Sequence record: MT028491.1
Direction: 5' to 3' (one strand)
Length of the DNA stretch: 64,000 bases
In this document: positions 18,010 through 57,300 of the stretch, one piece after another
How the letters are laid out: each line of letters opens with the position of its first letter
Position numbering within the stretch: position 1 is the stretch's first letter
Position numbers and translations under genes: made by a program
The notes under the pieces: generated by a model
What the model was told of the DNA's origin: nothing
Databases searched by the model: none
The model's input: only the letters and a program-made list of their open reading frames with translations

Positions 18010-18072
18010 TATATGTTCTCCTATGTTATTTCTGTCTAAATTTTAGTTTATTTTTATTAAAATTTTAACTAA

Positions 18073-18594
18073 CTACCAACGGTAGTTTACGCCTACCGTG
18101 ATTCGATGATCCTTTTCCGAATCATTTCCACCATCAAATGGTTTCACAAACCTATATCTGGTGTCAAGTTCCAAACGTTCCGTAACATTAAACTTGATAC
18201 CGCCACCAACATTCCAAACCGCATAATCAGAATGGTTGTCATTCCATTTATATCCAACGCCAGCAAGCACATAAGGCTTGATACCGTTCAATGGATAACC
18301 AGCAATAAAATTTGTGGATAACAGGTGTGAATTGTTGACTGTATATTCATAAGCCAATTCACCGGCAAAACGTTCATCAAAATTGTAACCAACCAGTGCA
18401 CCAACATTAGCGTTGGTATCACCATAATTGGTTACGCCTGAAAAGACGCCTGTATAAACACCTGTGTAGGGAGTGATGATTTGTTCTGTAACAATATCAA
18501 TGGTTTGAAGTTGAATTGCATCAGCGGCATGAGCCGCCATGTTGATTGAGAGTGAAAGAATACCCGCAACCAACAAAGATCGTCCTAGTTTCAT
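18073..18594 (-). CDS. Omp25/Omp31/RopB-like outer-membrane beta-barrel protein
   Basis: Signal peptide ending AHA-ADAIQ; alternating beta-strands (GALVGYNF, KPYVLAGVGY, VGGGIKF, LDTRYRF); C-terminal aromatic VGVNYRW. Confidence 0.85.
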   Translation of the reverse strand: MKLGRSLLVAGILSLSINMAAHAADAIQLQTIDIVTEQIITPYTGVYTGVFSGVTNYGDTNANVGALVGYNFDERFAGELAYEYTVNNSHLLSTNFIAGYPLNGIKPYVLAGVGYKWNDNHSDYAVWNVGGGIKFNVTERLELDTRYRFVKPFDGGNDSEKDHRITVGVNYRW

Positions 18595-20938: not shown

Positions 20939-20968
20939 AGGGTGCGGTTGACAAATCGCGCCTTTTTT
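20939..20968 (+). terminator. intrinsic terminator overlapping a sigma70-like -35 box
   Basis: GGTGCGGTT-GACA-AATCGCGCC-TTTTTT; TTGACA-N17-TACCTT. Confidence 0.65.
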
Positions 20969-20975
20969 GTTACCT

Positions 20976-20983
20976 TATAAATA
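20976..20983 (+). promoter_or_regulatory. T4-type late promoter
   Basis: Perfect TATAAATA. Confidence 0.7.
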
Positions 20984-21021
20984 AGCGTGTATCTCATTTT
21001 GCAGAAAGGGAATCAGAATAA

Positions 21022-49895: not shown

Positions 49896-50006
49896 TTGGA
49901 TTAACCGAAAATCAGATTAACAAAAACACCAACGACAATAGCCGCTGCAAAAAGACCGGCAAGGACAATAGGTCCATAATTTCCATTAAAAGCCTTGCCA
50001 TCTGCA

Positions 50007-50780
50007 TTAATCTGTGGTTCGTCCTTCCATTTCGACATTAGTATTCCTTTCTGTAAAATCAACAGTAACAATTTCACATAGAGGCGAGACGCCTTTCCAT
50101 TGATCTATGTAAACTTTCGTGTCGATACCTATACCAGATTCAAAGTAGAGTCCAGTGCTATTTTGAAATTTAACCGCTTTTCCATCTTTTTGTCGTTCAT
50201 AACATTGTCTACCACTATAATTAAATCCTGCCGACATTTGAGGAACAATGAAAACTCCATAGTCGCCCATATGTGAAGCTATATCAATAACATGATATTC
50301 AAATTCAGCACCAGAATAAGTTGGAGCATCAGCCGAACGTCGAATCTTCCCAAAAGGTGGATTGCTGATTACATAATCAAAATGCCCCAAATTCATTGAC
50401 ATAACGTCAAAAACATCAGCATTGATCCATGTAGCTTCCGGCACAAGTTTTTTACCAACCTCATAATAAGCTGGATTTAACTCAACACATGTAATGTCAA
50501 GCTTATCCCTGTCATAATAATTACGACCTCTAACAGCATAGGAAAGAGCGCCAATACCAGCACAAAGATCAAGGATACGACCGGGACCGATTTCAAGAGC
50601 AAAATCAAAAGCCATGTCAAGAGGGGTAAAAAATGCCCCTGCTTGACCGTTCATATGATTCGCGCCTTCATGCCAATTGTTAAAAACAAACTCTTTATCG
50701 TCTTCTGTCAAAACATCTTTTTTGAGAATTTCAAGAGCCTGATTATGAGCCTTTGTTTGTAATTTCGTTAATTTCGCCAT
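50007..50780 (-). CDS. SAM-dependent amino-methyltransferase (probable DNA m6A/m4C)
   Basis: FFTP, ILDLCAGIG, VISNPPFG motifs. Confidence 0.8.
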   Translation of the reverse strand: MAKLTKLQTKAHNQALEILKKDVLTEDDKEFVFNNWHEGANHMNGQAGAFFTPLDMAFDFALEIGPGRILDLCAGIGALSYAVRGRNYYDRDKLDITCVELNPAYYEVGKKLVPEATWINADVFDVMSMNLGHFDYVISNPPFGKIRRSADAPTYSGAEFEYHVIDIASHMGDYGVFIVPQMSAGFNYSGRQCYERQKDGKAVKFQNSTGLYFESGIGIDTKVYIDQWKGVSPLCEIVTVDFTERNTNVEMEGRTTD

Positions 50781-51402
50781 AAATGAATACAGTATCCATA
50801 GCGGACTTTACAACTGGTGTATAACCCAAAGCCGCCAACCATTCCTTAGTTTCTGTGCTTGCTCTTTCTACAAAGATAACAGGCTTATATTTTTCAATTG
50901 TTTGATGTGCACCAGAAAGGGCTTTTCCTTCATATCCCTCAAGATCAAGCATGATCAAACCAACATTCGTAAATCCATAAGAATCGATCTTGGTTACAGG
51001 AATAGTTCCAGCCTTGTTTTCTTCAATCATATGCATACCAACATTTTGCATAGTCAGACGGCGCATGTTGCAAAGGCCATTTTCGGAGCCTAGAGCGGAT
51101 TGAAATTTGATGACATTATCGTTGTCTTTGTTATTCGCGACCAGACAAGTAAAATTCAACGGGTCTGGTTCAAATGTATAAACACGATTAAACAAACCGG
51201 AAAGAAGTCTAGGATACATTCCTAAATTTCCACCAGCTTGAATAACCGTGTCATAATTAGTTACATATTGCTGAATATTTTTGGAATGATGCTGTTCCCA
51301 ATCTACAACGGGTCCATCCCATGCACCAGTATCCGTATCAATCCAAAACCAACCAGTAATTCCCCCAACTTCTTTAAATTGATAGAAATTGATTTGACTC
51401 AT
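50743..51402 (-). CDS. FkbM-family methyltransferase
   Basis: IQAGGNLG, FEPDPLNF, IMLDLEGYE..ALSGA..TIEKYKPVIFVE. Confidence 0.85.
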   Translation of the reverse strand: MSQINFYQFKEVGGITGWFWIDTDTGAWDGPVVDWEQHHSKNIQQYVTNYDTVIQAGGNLGMYPRLLSGLFNRVYTFEPDPLNFTCLVANNKDNDNVIKFQSALGSENGLCNMRRLTMQNVGMHMIEENKAGTIPVTKIDSYGFTNVGLIMLDLEGYEGKALSGAHQTIEKYKPVIFVERASTETKEWLAALGYTPVVKSAMDTVFIYGEINEITNKGS

Positions 51403-51776
51403 ATTTTCTTTCGTTTTTCCCTCTTCTCATTCATTTCTTGATGAATAGTTTCATCATCCATGTTGAGATAATGTTTATTATAATGATAGGCTGGAATGAA
51501 ATCAGCTTCTTTAAACGCCTTTGTATATTCTTCCTTGAATTCCTCAAGGTCGATTGATAAGCGTTCTGAAACAAATTCATTAGCCTTTTCTTTCGAATAG
51601 CCCATATTTTCTAAATGTAGGGCAGCTTCAAATGCAAGCAATACAGCCATTTCATTCACTCCCTTCAAATTTTCCCATATTTTAGACAATTTGAAATTCA
51701 GTGTGTTTGAATTCCCAATTGTCTGGATTATAACCAAGAGCCGCTTTGATGACTTCCATTGCTTTTTCATGATCAT
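51399..51776 (-). CDS. hypothetical protein
   Basis: ORF; true start probably the internal MAVLLAFE. Confidence 0.5.
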   Translation of the reverse strand: MIMKKQWKSSKRLLVIIQTIGNSNTLNFKLSKIWENLKGVNEMAVLLAFEAALHLENMGYSKEKANEFVSERLSIDLEEFKEEYTKAFKEADFIPAYHYNKHYLNMDDETIHQEMNEKREKRKKI

Positions 51777-51921
51777 TTTTCAAATCCTTCGGAATGATCA
51801 TTTCAAAAGTTGTAATGCCATCTTTGGTCACTTTAGACGAAATACCAACACGTTCCAAGTAACGATATGCTTTGTGAGCATTGTTGTTTGGAACTGGCTT
51901 TGCAGAAATCAAAGTAGCCAT
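51682..51921 (-). CDS. hypothetical protein
   Basis: 79 aa with GAGG RBS. Confidence 0.65.
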   Translation of the reverse strand: MATLISAKPVPNNNAHKAYRYLERVGISSKVTKDGITTFEMIIPKDLKNDHEKAMEVIKAALGYNPDNWEFKHTEFQIV

Positions 51922-51923
51922 TT

Positions 51924-52097
51924 TTAACGATCCTCTATAGTGACATAAACGGTTTCTTCATTTGGTATGAAACCAACGTGTTTAACTTCCACCCATCTAT
52001 AATTAATATAGATGTGTTCTCCAACACGCGGAACGGCAGGAAGTGAGACAATCGATGTTGAAAATCTTCCTTCAACCTTAACCTTGATCATTTTCAT
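51924..52097 (-). CDS. hypothetical small beta protein
   Basis: Manually translated 57 aa, MKMIKVKVEGRF...LPAVPRVGEHI; GAGG RBS. Confidence 0.55.
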   Translation of the reverse strand: MKMIKVKVEGRFSTSIVSLPAVPRVGEHIYINYRWVEVKHVGFIPNEETVYVTIEDR

Positions 52098-52129
52098 AAC
52101 CTCATGTTGGAAATTCTTGTATCTAACAC

Positions 52130-52195
52130 CTTATGCCAGATAGTAAGGATTATGTCAACACCTAAAAATAAAAAAAGAGGCCGAAGCCTCTTTTT
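52130..52195 (-). promoter_or_regulatory. terminator plus early promoter cassette (PeSL-like)
   Basis: GAGGC-TTCG-GCCTC-T7 then TTGACA-N17-CATAAG. Confidence 0.65.
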
Positions 52196-52328
52196 AAAGA
52201 TTACGAGCGATATCTCTAATATCGTATCTGCTAATTCCAATGTCGCTTAGTTCACGATCAGTAAGACGTTCAAGTTCTTGAACAGTGCGACGGTATTTCT
52301 TGTATCTGCGAATTCTTTCCGAAAACAT
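52194..52328 (-). CDS. DUF1127 (YjiS-like) small arginine-rich protein
   Basis: Manually translated MFSERIRRYKKYRRTVQELERLTDRELSDIGISRYDIRDIARNL; AAGGA RBS; RTxxELxxLTDRELxDIGIxR signature. Confidence 0.9.
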   Translation of the reverse strand: MFSERIRRYKKYRRTVQELERLTDRELSDIGISRYDIRDIARNL

Positions 52329-52401
52329 ATTTATTCCTTTTTGCAAATGTTTTTCTTAAGTTATGCACTTATATTTATCCTAATTTTGCAAAAAAGGCAA
52401 C

Positions 52402-52425
52402 AAAAAAGGCCGGTTTTCACCGACC
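52402..52425 (-). terminator. intrinsic terminator of the late structural operon
   Basis: GGTCGGT-GAAA-ACCGGCC-TTTTTT. Confidence 0.8.
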
Positions 52426-52430
52426 ATCTT

Positions 52431-52445
52431 TGCATAGCTGATATG
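52431..52445. promoter_or_regulatory. putative LysR (LsrB/VtlR-type) binding box upstream of DUF1127
   Basis: TGCATAGCTGATATG: T-N11-A plus CAT-N7-ATG dyad, 31-45 nt upstream of a TTGCCT-N17-TAAATA promoter. Confidence 0.4.
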
Positions 52446-52449
52446 TGTT

Positions 52450-52803
52450 TTAACCAGTACCACCGGCTTTCATTGCTAATGCAATCAAACTGCCGAAAAC
52501 CGTAACTAGGATAAGACCGACGCCACCATAAACGATTTTTTGGATTGGTATAAAGGATTCTTTGGAAACGTAATTTTTTTCTACTTCGGCTTCATTAGCT
52601 TCGATACGATCATTTAAACGTTTTTCAAGTTCATTGATTCTAACGCTAAGTTTTGCTTCTGTGGTTTCTAATTTCTTGGCAAGAGCTTCGTTATTGGTTT
52701 TAATCTCATTTGCCAAACCGCCCAAAGTAGTCTGAATTGCTTGTGTTCGTTCGTCTAAACGCGCCAACAATAGCTGATTATTGTTGTTATCATTTTCGGA
52801 CAT
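52450..52803 (-). CDS. coiled-coil protein with C-terminal TM (possible holin-like or virion protein)
   Basis: LARLDERTQAI coiled coil and a single TM helix. Confidence 0.55.
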   Translation of the reverse strand: MSENDNNNNQLLLARLDERTQAIQTTLGGLANEIKTNNEALAKKLETTEAKLSVRINELEKRLNDRIEANEAEVEKNYVSKESFIPIQKIVYGGVGLILVTVFGSLIALAMKAGGTG

Positions 52804-53096
52804 CAGCCGCCCCCTTGTGGTTTTTTGAAGTAAACCATGCGCCCGGATTTAATACACCTTAGCACGATTGTTTCTTTAGGGTTGTCCTTGGCAAATCCTC
52901 GAATTTCATTAGAAAGGTTTTCATCAATGAAATATCTGGAATATCTATGCCTTGGATGTTTGACCAATTCAGGTCGCATAACAAGGTTGAAATCCACGTC
53001 AAAAACAGTGGCGTTAGCAAACTTTGAACGCTTATAACGAACACCATCATTTAATCCAGCGCTCGAATCAGTCGTTACAATATCTTCTTTGAGCAT
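52803..53096 (-). CDS. conserved T4-like hypothetical virion protein
   Basis: VFDVD...EIRGFAKDNPKETIVL...SGRMVYF pattern. Confidence 0.65.
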   Translation of the reverse strand: MLKEDIVTTDSSAGLNDGVRYKRSKFANATVFDVDFNLVMRPELVKHPRHRYSRYFIDENLSNEIRGFAKDNPKETIVLRCIKSGRMVYFKKPQGGG

Positions 53097-53103
53097 TTGC
53101 TAA

Positions 53104-53487
53104 TCACCCTTTTATTATTTTTCTTAGTTCTGATATGACTTTTTGATCTAAGTTGAAACCATCCGTTGGTATCACTTTATTATCATAGACGACTTCTTTG
53201 GGAAAAAAGTCTAGGAGTATAAGGAATGGAGATAAAACATCCTCATGACCATGTAATTCCATGTAGAGTATATTGGTCAATGCATGATGTTCAAAAACAT
53301 TATAGAGAATTCGAATATGGTTAAGTATAGAATTCGTCTGTAAAGTGCCATTGGATTTATAATGGCGCATTAGTCGCCTAATTTTACGCACACGCTTCAA
53401 ATCTTCAATAAATTCATCTGTAGAAATGCATATATGTGTGTAATGTTGGGCGGCATATATTTCAACATTAGATTTTGTTAGCATCAA
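53104..53487 (-). CDS. conserved T4-like hypothetical protein
   Basis: YAAQHY...EFIEDLKR...ILNHIRILYNVF pattern. Confidence 0.7.
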   Translation of the reverse strand: MMLTKSNVEIYAAQHYTHICISTDEFIEDLKRVRKIRRLMRHYKSNGTLQTNSILNHIRILYNVFEHHALTNILYMELHGHEDVLSPFLILLDFFPKEVVYDNKVIPTDGFNLDQKVISELRKIIKG

Positions 53488-53891
53488 AACGTTTCAAGCG
53501 CCACGCGCTTAATCTCCGTATTATTCACTTTAATATATAGATAATTTTCGTCAAAGAAAATACGACCGAAATCTAGCTGTGTATCAGCCGATTGCGCGGG
53601 TGTTAAAACATCAGTTAGAATTAGTTCTTCTGTTGATGTTTGTTTTGCTGTTACAGTATTTGCAGTTAGTGGAACGGTTGCATTGATAGATGCATTGTTA
53701 CCGGTTGTTACTACAAGGGATTCACCGATTGTAAGAGTGTCGGTTGTAATTGCTGGTAGTTGACCTACCAATTCCCCAATAGTGATATTTTTAGAGACTG
53801 GAATTTCGCTCTTCATATCGATTACTAGAAGTAGATCGTTAGCGGAAGGATTTACCAGTCTTTGAAGTTGCGATACCTTTTTATCAGACAT
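53484..53891 (-). CDS. virion structural protein
   Basis: MSDKKVSQL...DLLLVID..SKNIT; C-terminal GRIFFDENYLYI...KRVAL. Confidence 0.65.
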   Translation of the reverse strand: MSDKKVSQLQRLVNPSANDLLLVIDMKSEIPVSKNITIGELVGQLPAITTDTLTIGESLVVTTGNNASINATVPLTANTVTAKQTSTEELILTDVLTPAQSADTQLDFGRIFFDENYLYIKVNNTEIKRVALETF

Positions 53892-54072
53892 CTTGCTCTT
53901 CTTCCTTTTGCTTAGTCCTATTCAACATGATTTCGCGAGCTAGTTCACGATCTTTCGAAAATGAATCTGTAAGGACACCATACTTTTTAGATGGTTGATC
54001 CTTGCGCTCTAGGTTCACGTCTTTATTTATAGTGACTTTGCGCTCCATAATTTCCCTTGCGAGCTTATCCAT
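53884..54072 (-). CDS. hypothetical protein with internal LAREIM repeat
   Basis: 62 aa; DKLAREIM / RELAREIM. Confidence 0.55.
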   Translation of the reverse strand: MDKLAREIMERKVTINKDVNLERKDQPSKKYGVLTDSFSKDRELAREIMLNRTKQKEEEQDV

Positions 54073-54095
54073 AACAAATACCTTCCTTTAAAAAT

Positions 54096-54281
54096 TTATG
54101 GAGTTTCCGGGTCTGGTTCCGGTTCTACTGGTGGCGTAGTATCAAGATCAGAAATGCAAACTAGGACTTCATTGGTTCCGTTGTCGTGCTGGTAAACCCA
54201 ACCACGTTCGGTAGCAATGACCTTTTCTTTTTGATCTTCGGTAAGCCACTTTGGCTTGTCTGTCTTAGACCATAGTGCCAT
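54096..54281 (-). CDS. small virion protein
   Basis: MALWSK...ATERGWV...EVLVCI; start reassigned to the ATG at 54281 behind AAGGA and a late promoter. Confidence 0.6.
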   Translation of the reverse strand: MALWSKTDKPKWLTEDQKEKVIATERGWVYQHDNGTNEVLVCISDLDTTPPVEPEPDPETP

Positions 54282-54318
54282 TTGGAGTATTCCTTGTGTT
54301 AAAAAATGATTACAATAG

Positions 54319-54326
54319 TATTTATA
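54319..54326 (-). promoter_or_regulatory. T4-type late promoter
   Basis: Perfect TATAAATA on the minus strand. Confidence 0.7.
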
Positions 54327-54331
54327 AAAAC

Positions 54332-54353
54332 AAAGGGGGATTTCTCCCCCTTT
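54332..54353 (-). terminator. intrinsic terminator after the ART gene
   Basis: AAAGGGGGA-GAAA-TCCCCCTTT. Confidence 0.7.
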
Positions 54354-54366
54354 GTTAACTTTCGAA

Positions 54367-57300
54367 TTATATGCTTCTATTAATTCTTTTGTCTTTAAGA
54401 ACACTCTTTGAAACAAGTTTTACCTTGTAACACTTGTAAATTTCAATTTGTGAACGTCCATCATAAACAACAAGTTCTGGCGATCTGATATTATCGCCAC
54501 CGTAACCGGCGCGTCTTACTTGTGTTCTTTCGTCACTGATATATAGGTTAGATTCGAAAACATAACCGATAGTTCCAAATCTGCGACCGAAACCACTATC
54601 ACCGACATATTGCAGAGACTTTTCAAGAACTGGTGATAGATAGATACCGTTGCCGAGCATCTTACCAGTGACTTGAACGCCACCAATAGCTTGTGTAACG
54701 ACCTTAAAGCCAAATCGGAGAATCATATTCGCCGCCACCGATCCAGTGCCGTGGAAGAGTTGAGTTTCAACCTTGGCATTTGGATGATTATTCTTGAATT
54801 GAACCAATTCATCCGGTCTAATATGAACATCGTAAACATCTAGAACAACACAAGCGATGTCACCATGGCGACCATTGTATTTCTTTTCATACAAATCGTA
54901 TGAAATGGCGTCTAGATCATCTGTTGACAAATCAAGTTTCGTGACTTGAAGGTCTGGAACCCCAACAATATCGACCTTTTCAATTGCATCCTTGATACTG
55001 TTGAAAACACCCTTATTCTTGAATTCAGCCGCCGAAAATTTCACATCTGCATGTGTCTTAACGTCAAAATCGTTGAACTTCAAAATATCACTAAGACCTT
55101 TTGGAGTTAGCCTTAGATAAATAGGAAGAACCGATTTTGTATTGCTAAGCATGTCCATGACAGCTTTGTTAGTGACCATATCATCAGTGATTGATTCAAT
55201 GTGCTTAGGAGTGATTTTTTCATCACCAAAAACAAGCTTTAGATATTCATCAAACTGTTCCTTGCGGTCTTGTTCTGACAAATCGGAGTCGTTATAGATG
55301 TCATTGAAAAGTGTACCAAAACCCATGTTCTTAGCGACAGTAGGAGTAATTTTTACATTACTTTCCTTCATCTTTTCACGAATAATATTAGCATAAACCT
55401 TATACCAATTGCGATTATAACGAATAAGAGTTTCGGAAACTAGGTCTTTGGAATTCTTTCTGCGAGAAGTCACAATGTATTCAACATATGAACCAATTGC
55501 AGATTGAACATGAGCTACAGACAATACAGATTTGTAATTATCGATACCAGCATTGACAAATGCAGTAGGATCAAAACTACCACCACCATAACTAAGAAGA
55601 CTTCTCATCAAATTCATGATGGAAATATGGGCGATATATTCATCCCATTTCTTAGAAATGTTGATCATCTGTCCAAGCTTAGAGTACATAGAAAAGAAGT
55701 TCTGAGAACCAATTTGGGTAATTCTATTGTTACTATAAGAAGGACCAAACATTCCGGCAGTTTGGAAAAGTGGAGCAATGTTTCTTGAAAGAATTTTCAA
55801 TGTAAGTTCCGGGTTTACACTCAAAATATCCAATGAAATATCTTCATTTCCTGCAAAATTGTGATCAATCACCATTGCAGACAATGCGTTCATAATCTTT
55901 TTAACATCTGTAGGCACAGTGTCGCTGACATCCGTCATCATCTTAGCGATTCTGATTTGGATTTCGTGCGGCTTGTCGTTTAATGATAGAATCTTATCAA
56001 ACAAACTCTTAAGTTTTGTTTGATCAATCATAGTGGTTGCAAGCAATTCGGTAAAGATTTTAAAGAATCTATCATAATCGCTTGATCTTTGTGCCTTGAT
56101 AAGCAAATCAAGAGCATGAATGATTTTCTCATATAGAATGATATTGACATCGCTAAAAGATATATCACCACTATGAAGCATCTGAATAAATGAATTAGTT
56201 GTCGCATCATTCAAAGACATCATATTGACAAGCGTGAAATCACTCCATGCGGAACTGATCTTGGTTGTTCCAAAGAATGAAACAACATTAGTACCAGTCA
56301 ACATTTCATCCCAATAGCCATAAATTGGAACAGAATCGTTGTACGTATAACGTAACAAGGTCATCATTTTGTTCCAGTAATCAACGGAAGAAAATGGAGT
56401 TGTTTTGATCATTTGAGTTAGTTCTTGACGATGTTCATCAAGATAACGCTTGACAATCTGTTGAGACGTTACACTAGCACCATAACCAACAGCCAGAATA
56501 TCGAATTGCTGCATTTCAATGGCTTTAGCAACTACCGGTTCGACCAGAACATAAGGTAATTCACTAATCATATTGAAATTACTGAATCTCTTATGCGTTG
56601 AAAGATTTAGAGCAAAATCAATAGCGTCTTCAATAAATCTTTCCCAAGTTCCACCGTTGTCAATAACAAATTTCTTAAGAGATTTATCGTCAACAAGTTC
56701 ATCAATTTCAAAACCTTCTGGCGTTCCAATAATTTCATTGATACGTTCAATGTAATCACCAGTAGTCATATAATCGCTGGATTTAGTTTTGGTAGCAAAA
56801 CCAATGAATTCACCAACTCTGGTAACAAGTGTGATAAGAGCGGCACCACCAACTTTAACATCTGCCAGATTAACAGAAATTTTCATTTTGGCAAAGAAAC
56901 CACTTGACGCAAGAGCAAGGAATCGTTTTCCAATTTCCGAATCAACCGGATATTTTTTGAAAAGCTTTTCGGTATTGAGATTGTAAGTGTCTTTGACGAG
57001 ATTGGACAAAGCGTCTACAAAAGCCGTATCCTGATTCATCTTTTCCATAATATCAAAGAAATCTACAAAATCTTGTTGATGAATCTCTTCAACTTTATTG
57101 AAGATTTGCATAAGATTTGTGTTGAATTCCTTGAGAATACCAGCCTGTGACACCAAAATATCAGCATAATGATTGTAGACCAATTCAATAACATGAACAG
57201 CCTTATCAAGCTGATAATTGTCATAGCTTCTGCAATACATGTCGATCAAACGATGATAGTTCGTATAACGTGCATAACTCTTGGAAAATTTAGAAAGATC

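Follow-up and report, generated by a model that had tools for sequence, protein, structure and literature searches.

Has a virulent phage that carries a gene for a short arginine-rich protein also kept the operator through which the host's own genes of that family are activated, and would such an operator still act on the phage gene? The question is raised by phiOC_p398 of vB_OspM_OC (MT028491.1), a phage of 227,654 bp whose host is Ochrobactrum sp. POC9. vB_OspM_OC is a T4-like jumbo phage and has the Sinorhizobium phages phiM12, phiM7, phiM19 and phiN3 as its nearest relatives (PMC7139368). The stretch of DNA analysed, referred to below as the window, is the final 64 kb of the genome (64,000 nucleotides), and window positions are obtained by subtracting 163,654 from the positions in the record. 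Compared with MT028491.1, window positions 50000–55000 were 100% identical. An earlier note, made from the letters of the window alone, had proposed that the phage captured a DUF1127 gene together with a box for the host LysR-type regulator LsrB/VtlR. The gene concerned is the following:

52194–52328, minus strand: CDS phiOC_p398, with the ATG at 52328 and the stop codon at 52196–52194 (Pfam PF06568, phrog_26566, GenBank CDS)

The predicted product of phiOC_p398 (p398) has 44 residues and consists of the domain only, with 9 arginines and 2 lysines in the translation. Against the Pfam profile of DUF1127 (PF06568) it scores 56.1 bits (E = 3e-15) where the cut-off is 23.3, and the match runs over the whole domain, residues 4–38 of p398 corresponding to profile positions 3–37 of 37. 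The protein also matches phrog_26566 (PHROG 26566, unknown function) and aligns end to end with bacterial DUF1127 members of 46–48 residues, its N-terminus in register with their MF... starts. In a word-based protein search with the p398 product the query itself was the sole match. On the strength of the profile match and the alignments, p398 belongs, as a phage copy, to the short Arg-rich DUF1127 proteins known from the Rhizobiales, and it is the sole DUF1127 gene of vB_OspM_OC. The Pfam search thus bears out the 44-residue DUF1127 reading frame of the earlier note. The gene is not unannotated, as had been stated there, since GenBank already holds the CDS as a 'hypothetical protein'; the family assignment alone was missing. 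The identity of the protein is 54–56% to the paralogues of the host genus, 60–68% to proteins of Methylobacterium, Salinarimonas and Bosea and 49–57% to the other phage copies, and the GC content of the gene is 37.8%, compared with 37.7% for the phage genome.

The signals around p398 were located as follows, all of them on the strand of the gene:

52172–52195, minus strand: intrinsic terminator of the p398 transcript, with a 10-bp stem, a TTCG loop and a T run
52335–52339, minus strand: Shine-Dalgarno sequence AAGGA, 6 nt before the ATG, read from the sequence
52372–52378, minus strand: probable late-promoter core ATAAATA, overlapping the −10 hexamer TAAATA (52377–52372)
52395–52400, minus strand: weak −35-like hexamer TTGCCT, 17 nt before TAAATA, read from the sequence
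52402–52425, minus strand: intrinsic terminator of p399 (hairpin 52425–52408 plus T run), with a 7-bp stem and a loop
52432–52446, minus strand: VtlR/LsrB-type operator dyad ACAT-N7-ATGC, with an extended host match at 52442–52428, assigned by motif, host identity and matrix
52450–52803, minus strand: upstream gene phiOC_p399, 117 residues, with a long coiled coil and a C-terminal hydrophobic segment

Both the ribosome-binding site and the terminator claimed for p398 were confirmed, the first as AAGGA at 6 nt from the ATG and the second as a 10-bp stem followed by a T run at 52195–52172. The 7-mers that are enriched upstream of genes in vB_OspM_OC include AAGGAAT and AAAGGAA. With a transcription start predicted near 52365, the position of the terminator predicts a monocistronic p398 mRNA of about 190 nt. 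The promoter is less clear-cut. The proposed pair TTGCCT-N17-TAAATA is present in the sequence, but it is weak, was not accepted by a sigma-70 consensus scan, and has a −10 that overlaps ATAAATA. A search of the window against Rfam gave no matches. The operator dyad is located between the stop codon of p399 and the p399 terminator, and this terminator in turn sits between the dyad and the core promoter of p398; the p399 protein itself has weak family matches throughout. In a near-identical relative from a 'fungus metagenome' run, position 52369 is changed (T>A on the plus strand), so that the TATAAG shortly after ATAAATA becomes TATATG. The sequence that follows the p399 terminator, CCTTTTTTGTTGCCTT (52380–52410), is nearly identical to one ahead of the gene at about 21020, where a terminator is followed by CCTTTTTTGTTACCTT and then ATAAATA (20950–20985), and this terminator–promoter junction may have been reused.

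The box that the earlier note gave for the regulator, GCAT-N3-TG-N3-T, was compared with the literature and is the published VtlR/LsrB motif (PMC7486931). An exact match lies at 52432–52444 on the plus strand, opposite to p398. The statements about the biology also hold: DUF1127 genes are direct targets of activation by VtlR in Brucella and Agrobacterium (PMC7486931), and DUF1127 proteins have been tied to RNA binding and to phosphate and carbon metabolism. LsrB/VtlR is described as present throughout the Rhizobiales, Brucella included. In S. meliloti the motif stands at −61 to −49 of the PabcR1 promoter, which loses activity by a factor of more than 22 when the motif is removed and is bound by LsrB in gel shifts (PMC8844928). 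The bare 7-base pattern occurs 11 times in the window, where 12.7 occurrences are expected, and 34 times in the genome. As these counts are at the level of chance, the pattern alone carries no weight, and the box was at first taken for a chance occurrence. That view was overturned by the comparison with host promoters.

Genomes of the host genus were reached via the published Brucella 15-mer, which was searched exactly in 401 genomes of the family. There were 11 matches, three of them at AbcR/ar14 sRNA genes and none of the 11 adjoining a DUF1127 gene; at the AbcR (Rfam ar15) genes the 15-mer begins at −63 and is oriented toward the sRNA. The main DUF1127 protein of one genome, G101, is 96% identical to a protein of Brucella anthropi (formerly Ochrobactrum), and B. 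anthropi and other former Ochrobactrum species are the closest named matches, by which the genus of G101 is the host genus. Genomes of this genus (3.1–5.9 Mb) hold about four DUF1127 genes each. In the 26 that were sampled, the main DUF1127 gene is preceded by a nearly invariant operator ending ...GCAGCTATGCAAA, and a second paralogue with the same operator was seen in two of the 26. The ATGC of the operator lies 34 nt before TATATC or TATATG, and the opposite strand reads GCAT-AGC-TG-NNN-T, i.e. the published motif. At host DUF1127 genes the published motif therefore points away from the gene, and the site is a dyad, GCAN-N7-ATGC. The operator is also found at the AbcR sRNA in the one genome of the host genus examined for it. 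When vtlR was sought beside the AbcR locus of one such genome, a phosphoesterase gene was found there instead. At the 76 closest bacterial loci analysed (Methylobacterium, Bosea, Salinarimonas and others), the box starts about 48–49 nt before a CTATAT-like −10. In many bacterial DUF1127 promoters the start of the leader directly after the −10 is conserved as well, as GCAGTGCACAAC in Bosea and GGTGCGTTGCAACAG in Methylobacterium, and this may be a second regulatory element.

Read in the orientation of the gene, the phage site is ACATATCAGCTATGCAAAG (52446–52428). A 13-mer within it, CAGCTATGCAAAG, is common to several promoters of the host genus, a 12-mer is common to all of them and a 14-mer to one paralogue, and the site has the same orientation relative to the gene as in the host-genus DUF1127 promoters. 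The dyad lies 104–118 nt upstream of the p398 ATG, and from the end of AGCTATGC to the ATG there are 103 nt, which is also the modal distance in the host (12 of 26 promoters). The 12-mer occurs exactly twice per genome in five genomes of the host genus, and all ten copies are just upstream of DUF1127 genes and on the same strand. About 0.009 occurrences of it are expected in the window, and its 10-mer core is unique in the 227-kb phage genome. A 24-nt matrix was built from 18 distinct host boxes and used to score about 455,000 phage positions. The phage site, at 15.5 bits, comes first in the window, where the next score is 5.0, and first in the whole genome, where the runners-up reach 10.9 and 8.5 bits; its lead is thus 10.5 bits in the window and 4.6 bits in the genome. 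It nevertheless scores below every host site (20–44 bits), and its left half-site is ACAT rather than GCAN. In the one near-identical relative that covers the site the box is unchanged; among the sequencing runs indexed, none from RNA contained the phage. The runner-up matches lie at record positions 79675–79698 and 76739–76762, inside p100 (glycosyltransferase) and p095; one of them reads GCATTGCAGCTATCG, and both are probably due to chance.

Two further points bear on how the site is to be read. At the AbcR sRNAs the motif reads toward the gene, whereas it points away from p398, and this had been raised as an objection. It was dropped because the motif also points away from the gene in the DUF1127 promoters of the host genus and because the site is a dyad. 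The sequence that follows the operator is of quite a different kind from the operator itself. A global alignment of the 103-nt stretch between operator and ATG with six host promoters gave z values of −0.5 to 1.2, i.e. no detectable homology, and a likeness seen by eye between TATAAG-TGCATAAC and the host −10 and leader was dropped on the same values. An intact 13-mer within surroundings that are diverged, phage-like in GC content and without alignment to the host points to selection on the operator. We regard it as very likely that the phage operator is real and of the host type, as the earlier note had suspected, given the 12–14 nt of host identity, the shared orientation and distance to the ATG and the top matrix score; that it binds VtlR would seem a good deal more probable than not. 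The claim that the gene was captured together with its wiring was, on the other hand, not demonstrated: the identity to the host paralogues (54–56%) is lower than that to Methylobacterium and Salinarimonas proteins (60–68%), the GC content is that of a phage gene and nothing beyond the box aligns. Because the leader has no similarity to the host and the protein is not closest to the host paralogues, a recent capture of gene and promoter from the present host is unsupported.

The phage site departs from the host arrangement in its distance from the promoter. Promoters of the host genus and of S. meliloti have 33–34 nt from dyad to −10, as do four further phage lineages, and p398 has 54 nt. At +34 after the phage dyad the sequence is CCTTTT, with no −10-like hexamer, and the first such hexamer is TAAATA at +54. 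The hairpin of the p399 terminator accounts for the 20 additional nt. Relative to the predicted start of transcription, the site is therefore not at the canonical position (−61 to −49, 33–34 nt before the −10); with a 54-nt gap it would extend over roughly −67 to −81, in place of about −47 to −61. Since 20 bp are near to two helical turns, the operator would remain on roughly the same side of the helix, which is a plausibility argument only. Activation of p398 from the shifted operator position is plausible.

The −10 hexamer is itself part of another signal. No other 7-mer is as strongly enriched upstream of genes in the window as ATAAATA, which precedes 10 genes with 1.6 expected. The genome has 58 copies, of which 32 are intergenic (non-coding DNA being 10% of the genome) and 35 have a start codon no more than 80 nt downstream, most often at 30–49 nt. 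Other copies in the window are:

6689, 8728, 8752, 18713, 20977, 24680 and 27942, plus strand: ATAAATA, 7-mer matches
54325 (preceding an operon) and 60991, minus strand: ATAAATA, 7-mer matches

The copy at p398 ends 43 nt before the ATG, inside the modal range, and a homologue of gp55 is encoded at record positions 18020–18439 (E = 4e-9). ATAAATA is likely to be the late-promoter core of vB_OspM_OC, and p398 has what marks a T4-type late gene, namely a core some 30–50 nt before the start in a genome with a gp55 sigma factor. Given the typical distance of this ATAAATA and the gp55 homologue, a late promoter is very probable for p398, its core falling on the same −10 at which VtlR would act. 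The arrangement is like that of the gp55-dependent late promoters of T4 type (TATAAATA), with ATAAATA placed before p398 as it is at about 35 other genes of the phage. It differs from them in that the p398 core is preceded by G and followed by T, C/A/G predominating there.

To see how far the pairing of dyad and gene extends among viruses, DUF1127 genes were located by tblastn. They were found in 43 phage records, which include the phiM12 group, Atu_ph07, Phosso, RHph_I1_18, roseophages and Methylophilales phages, and in 331 stretches of viral contigs. The 79 viral loci that could be analysed fall into 30 distinct upstream lineages, in which the dyad was sought within 160 nt upstream of the gene. 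GCAT-N7-ATGC with at most one mismatch is present in 8 of the 30 lineages, compared with 1.24 in shuffled sequences (maximum 5 in 500 shuffles), and perfect dyads are present in three (L173, L174 and L179), where 0.05 are expected. In L173, L174, L179 and L218 the dyad stands exactly 34 nt before TATATA or TAAATA. The first of these lineages (L173/L273) is a contig of 518,643 bp (IMGVR_UViG_3300017917_001342) with a 70-residue DUF1127 gene and the perfect dyad GCATATCAGCTATGC 34 nt before TATATA. It has a second box 33 nt further upstream and has a 15-mer in common with the vB_OspM_OC site. This 15-mer is found exactly in 116 stretches of IMG/VR, about the number expected by chance. In 80 of these 116 stretches, which hold 81 copies, a DUF1127 ORF follows one copy, that of the L173 contig. 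Taken together, the counts across lineages suggest that the pairing of dyad and DUF1127 gene before viral genes is not peculiar to one phage.

The phiM12/phiN3 group and the unrelated Sinorhizobium phage Phosso have an 11-mer in common before the gene. This 11-mer, CCAGCTATGTC, which contains AGCTATG, lies 34 nt before TAAATT upstream of DUF1127 (at 2402–2412 of the phiM12 locus, L002, and at about 482–492 of the Phosso locus, L142). Both Phosso and Mesorhizobium sp. SP-1A (L036) have AGCTATG-N9-CATAGCT. As the DUF1127 promoter of S. meliloti (L146) has a different core, the 11-mer was taken as a mere hint.

The reading that we favour, with a probability of roughly 0.55, is that the dyad upstream of p398 is an operator for host VtlR/LsrB that has been kept by selection, and that the expression of p398 is assisted by VtlR. 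Early in infection, host VtlR bound at 52446–52432 would help the host sigma-70 RNA polymerase to use the weak TTGCCT-N17-TAAATA promoter, giving a short monocistronic p398 mRNA that would end at 52195–52172. Expression of p398 would then follow the activity of VtlR in the host, which is tied to growth phase and redox state, and late transcription from ATAAATA directed by gp55 would probably add to it. By analogy with CcaF1 and with the Agrobacterium and Brucella proteins, the product might bind RNA or otherwise shift RNA processing and carbon and phosphate metabolism in favour of the phage.

Dual expression, early through VtlR and sigma-70 and late through gp55, would be the simplest way to combine these signals. 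Its main rival has p398 transcribed solely from ATAAATA by the gp55-bearing RNA polymerase, the dyad being either a leftover of the acquisition of the gene or a VtlR site without effect on p398. In favour of such a late-only arrangement, ATAAATA is the hallmark upstream motif of this phage, stands 43 nt before the ATG and has a gp55 homologue to serve it, while the dyad is 20 bp off the canonical position and is cut off from the promoter by a terminator. Were the dyad a neutral leftover, however, it should have eroded as the remainder of the 103-nt leader has, yet 13–14 nt are still identical to the host, and that the dyad recurs in further phage lineages is another argument for a function. 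We consider this rival unlikely. Less likely still is that VtlR is bound to some other end, with the site acting as a decoy that titrates VtlR from the DUF1127 and AbcR promoters of the host as the phage DNA multiplies, or as a roadblock or an insulator where the p399 unit ends. Such a role might fit a site that closely copies the operator, stands at a non-canonical distance from the promoter, is placed between the stop codon and the terminator of p399 and is the only one of its kind in the phage genome. A single site per genome would nevertheless make a weak sponge; moreover, the site is always linked to a DUF1127 gene and not to arbitrary positions, and other phage lineages keep the canonical 34-nt spacing before DUF1127, which fits activation.

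There is finally the explanation by chance, in which a short degenerate motif happens to occur in AT-rich intergenic DNA. The 7-base pattern, with 11 occurrences in the window for 12.7 expected and 34 in the genome, is just what it predicts. It does not account for a 12-mer with an expectation of 0.009 in the window, for a 10-base core that is unique in the genome or for a matrix score that leads by 4.6 bits in the genome and by 10.5 bits in the window, nor for a site in the right orientation and at the right distance upstream of the only DUF1127 gene. Of the 81 exact copies of the 15-mer (in 80 of 116 stretches), moreover, 80 have no DUF1127 ORF following them, the exception being on the 518-kb phage contig. 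With the evidence of 12-mer, matrix, orientation and distance combined, chance is excluded for practical purposes, and we give it next to no weight.

Having kept to VtlR-assisted expression as the preferred reading, we can set p398 beside systems that are better known. It resembles the DUF1127 proteins that are activated by VtlR/LsrB (BAB1_0914, BAB2_0512 and BAB2_0574 of B. abortus and Atu1667 of A. tumefaciens) in being a short (44–48 residues), Arg-rich, domain-only protein with a monocistronic gene. As in such genes of the Rhizobiales, its putative operator has the form GCAT-N3-TG-N3-T / GCAT-N7-ATGC, with 12–14 nt identical to Brucella/Ochrobactrum and 103 nt from the ATG. It differs from them in belonging to a virulent T4-like jumbo phage of 38% GC, in having 54–56% identity to the host paralogues, in the 54 rather than 34 nt, with a hairpin between, that separate operator and −10, in the overlap of its −10 with the late core, and in its degenerate left half-site. 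With the RNA-binding protein CcaF1 of Rhodobacter (Cereibacter) sphaeroides, p398 has the domain and the conserved arginines in common, and for this reason an RNA-directed activity is proposed for it. CcaF1, at about 71 residues, is longer, is co-transcribed with sRNAs and comes from a bacterium that is reported to be without LsrB.

A parallel for the regulation, rather than for the protein, is offered by cyanophages. In work by Zeng and Chisholm from 2012, the cyanophage auxiliary genes pstS and phoA are said to carry the 'pho boxes' of the host regulator PhoB. There too the phage copy of a host gene keeps the operator of a host regulator, joins the host regulon and responds to the physiology of the host. 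The regulator in the present case would be of the LysR type and not a two-component response regulator, the host belongs to another clade, and the product would be a 44-residue regulatory protein (putatively) instead of a transporter or an enzyme. That vB_OspM_OC keeps both the protein and the operator suggests that phages may read the physiological state of the host through a LysR-type regulator as cyanophages do through PhoB. A wider proposal, which we put forward tentatively and hold to be possible but somewhat doubtful, is that the LsrB/VtlR regulon extends into viruses by way of the DUF1127 genes that phages carry. The dyad would be retained by many unrelated phages of alphaproteobacteria, which would sense through LsrB the growth or redox state of the host and release a modulator of RNA metabolism accordingly. 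For vB_OspM_OC this would mean that the operator was shifted upstream by two helical turns, leaving space for a terminator, and that it still works there.

DUF1127 proteins and VtlR/LsrB are central to the host–microbe interactions of Brucella, Agrobacterium and Sinorhizobium, and their mechanism is poorly understood. That a virulent phage keeps the protein together with a near-exact copy of the operator is an independent argument that the two form a functional unit. The p398 promoter, with its operator shifted by 20 bp, would also be a compact natural variant for dissecting activation by VtlR.

A search of the literature found no description of a DUF1127 protein encoded by a phage. The neighbours of the phage genes are in several cases related to tRNA. 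In RHph_I1_18 the DUF1127 gene (L143, 550–687) lies between genes for a CCA-adding enzyme and a tRNA-His guanylyltransferase, in Phosso (L142, 577–726) it adjoins a tRNA-Lys gene, and in phiM12 (L002, 2486–2644) it is about 1.5 kb downstream of a tRNA cluster. These neighbourhoods are hints that fit an RNA-related role. Just upstream of the DUF1127 gene of phiM12, and likewise in phiN3 (L144), there is also an unannotated stretch (L002, 2290–2392) that resembles the T-arm and acceptor of a tRNA, GGTTCGAATCCC...CCA. ARAGORN called no tRNA in it, and judging from its sequence it may be a fragment of a tRNA or a structured RNA of another kind.
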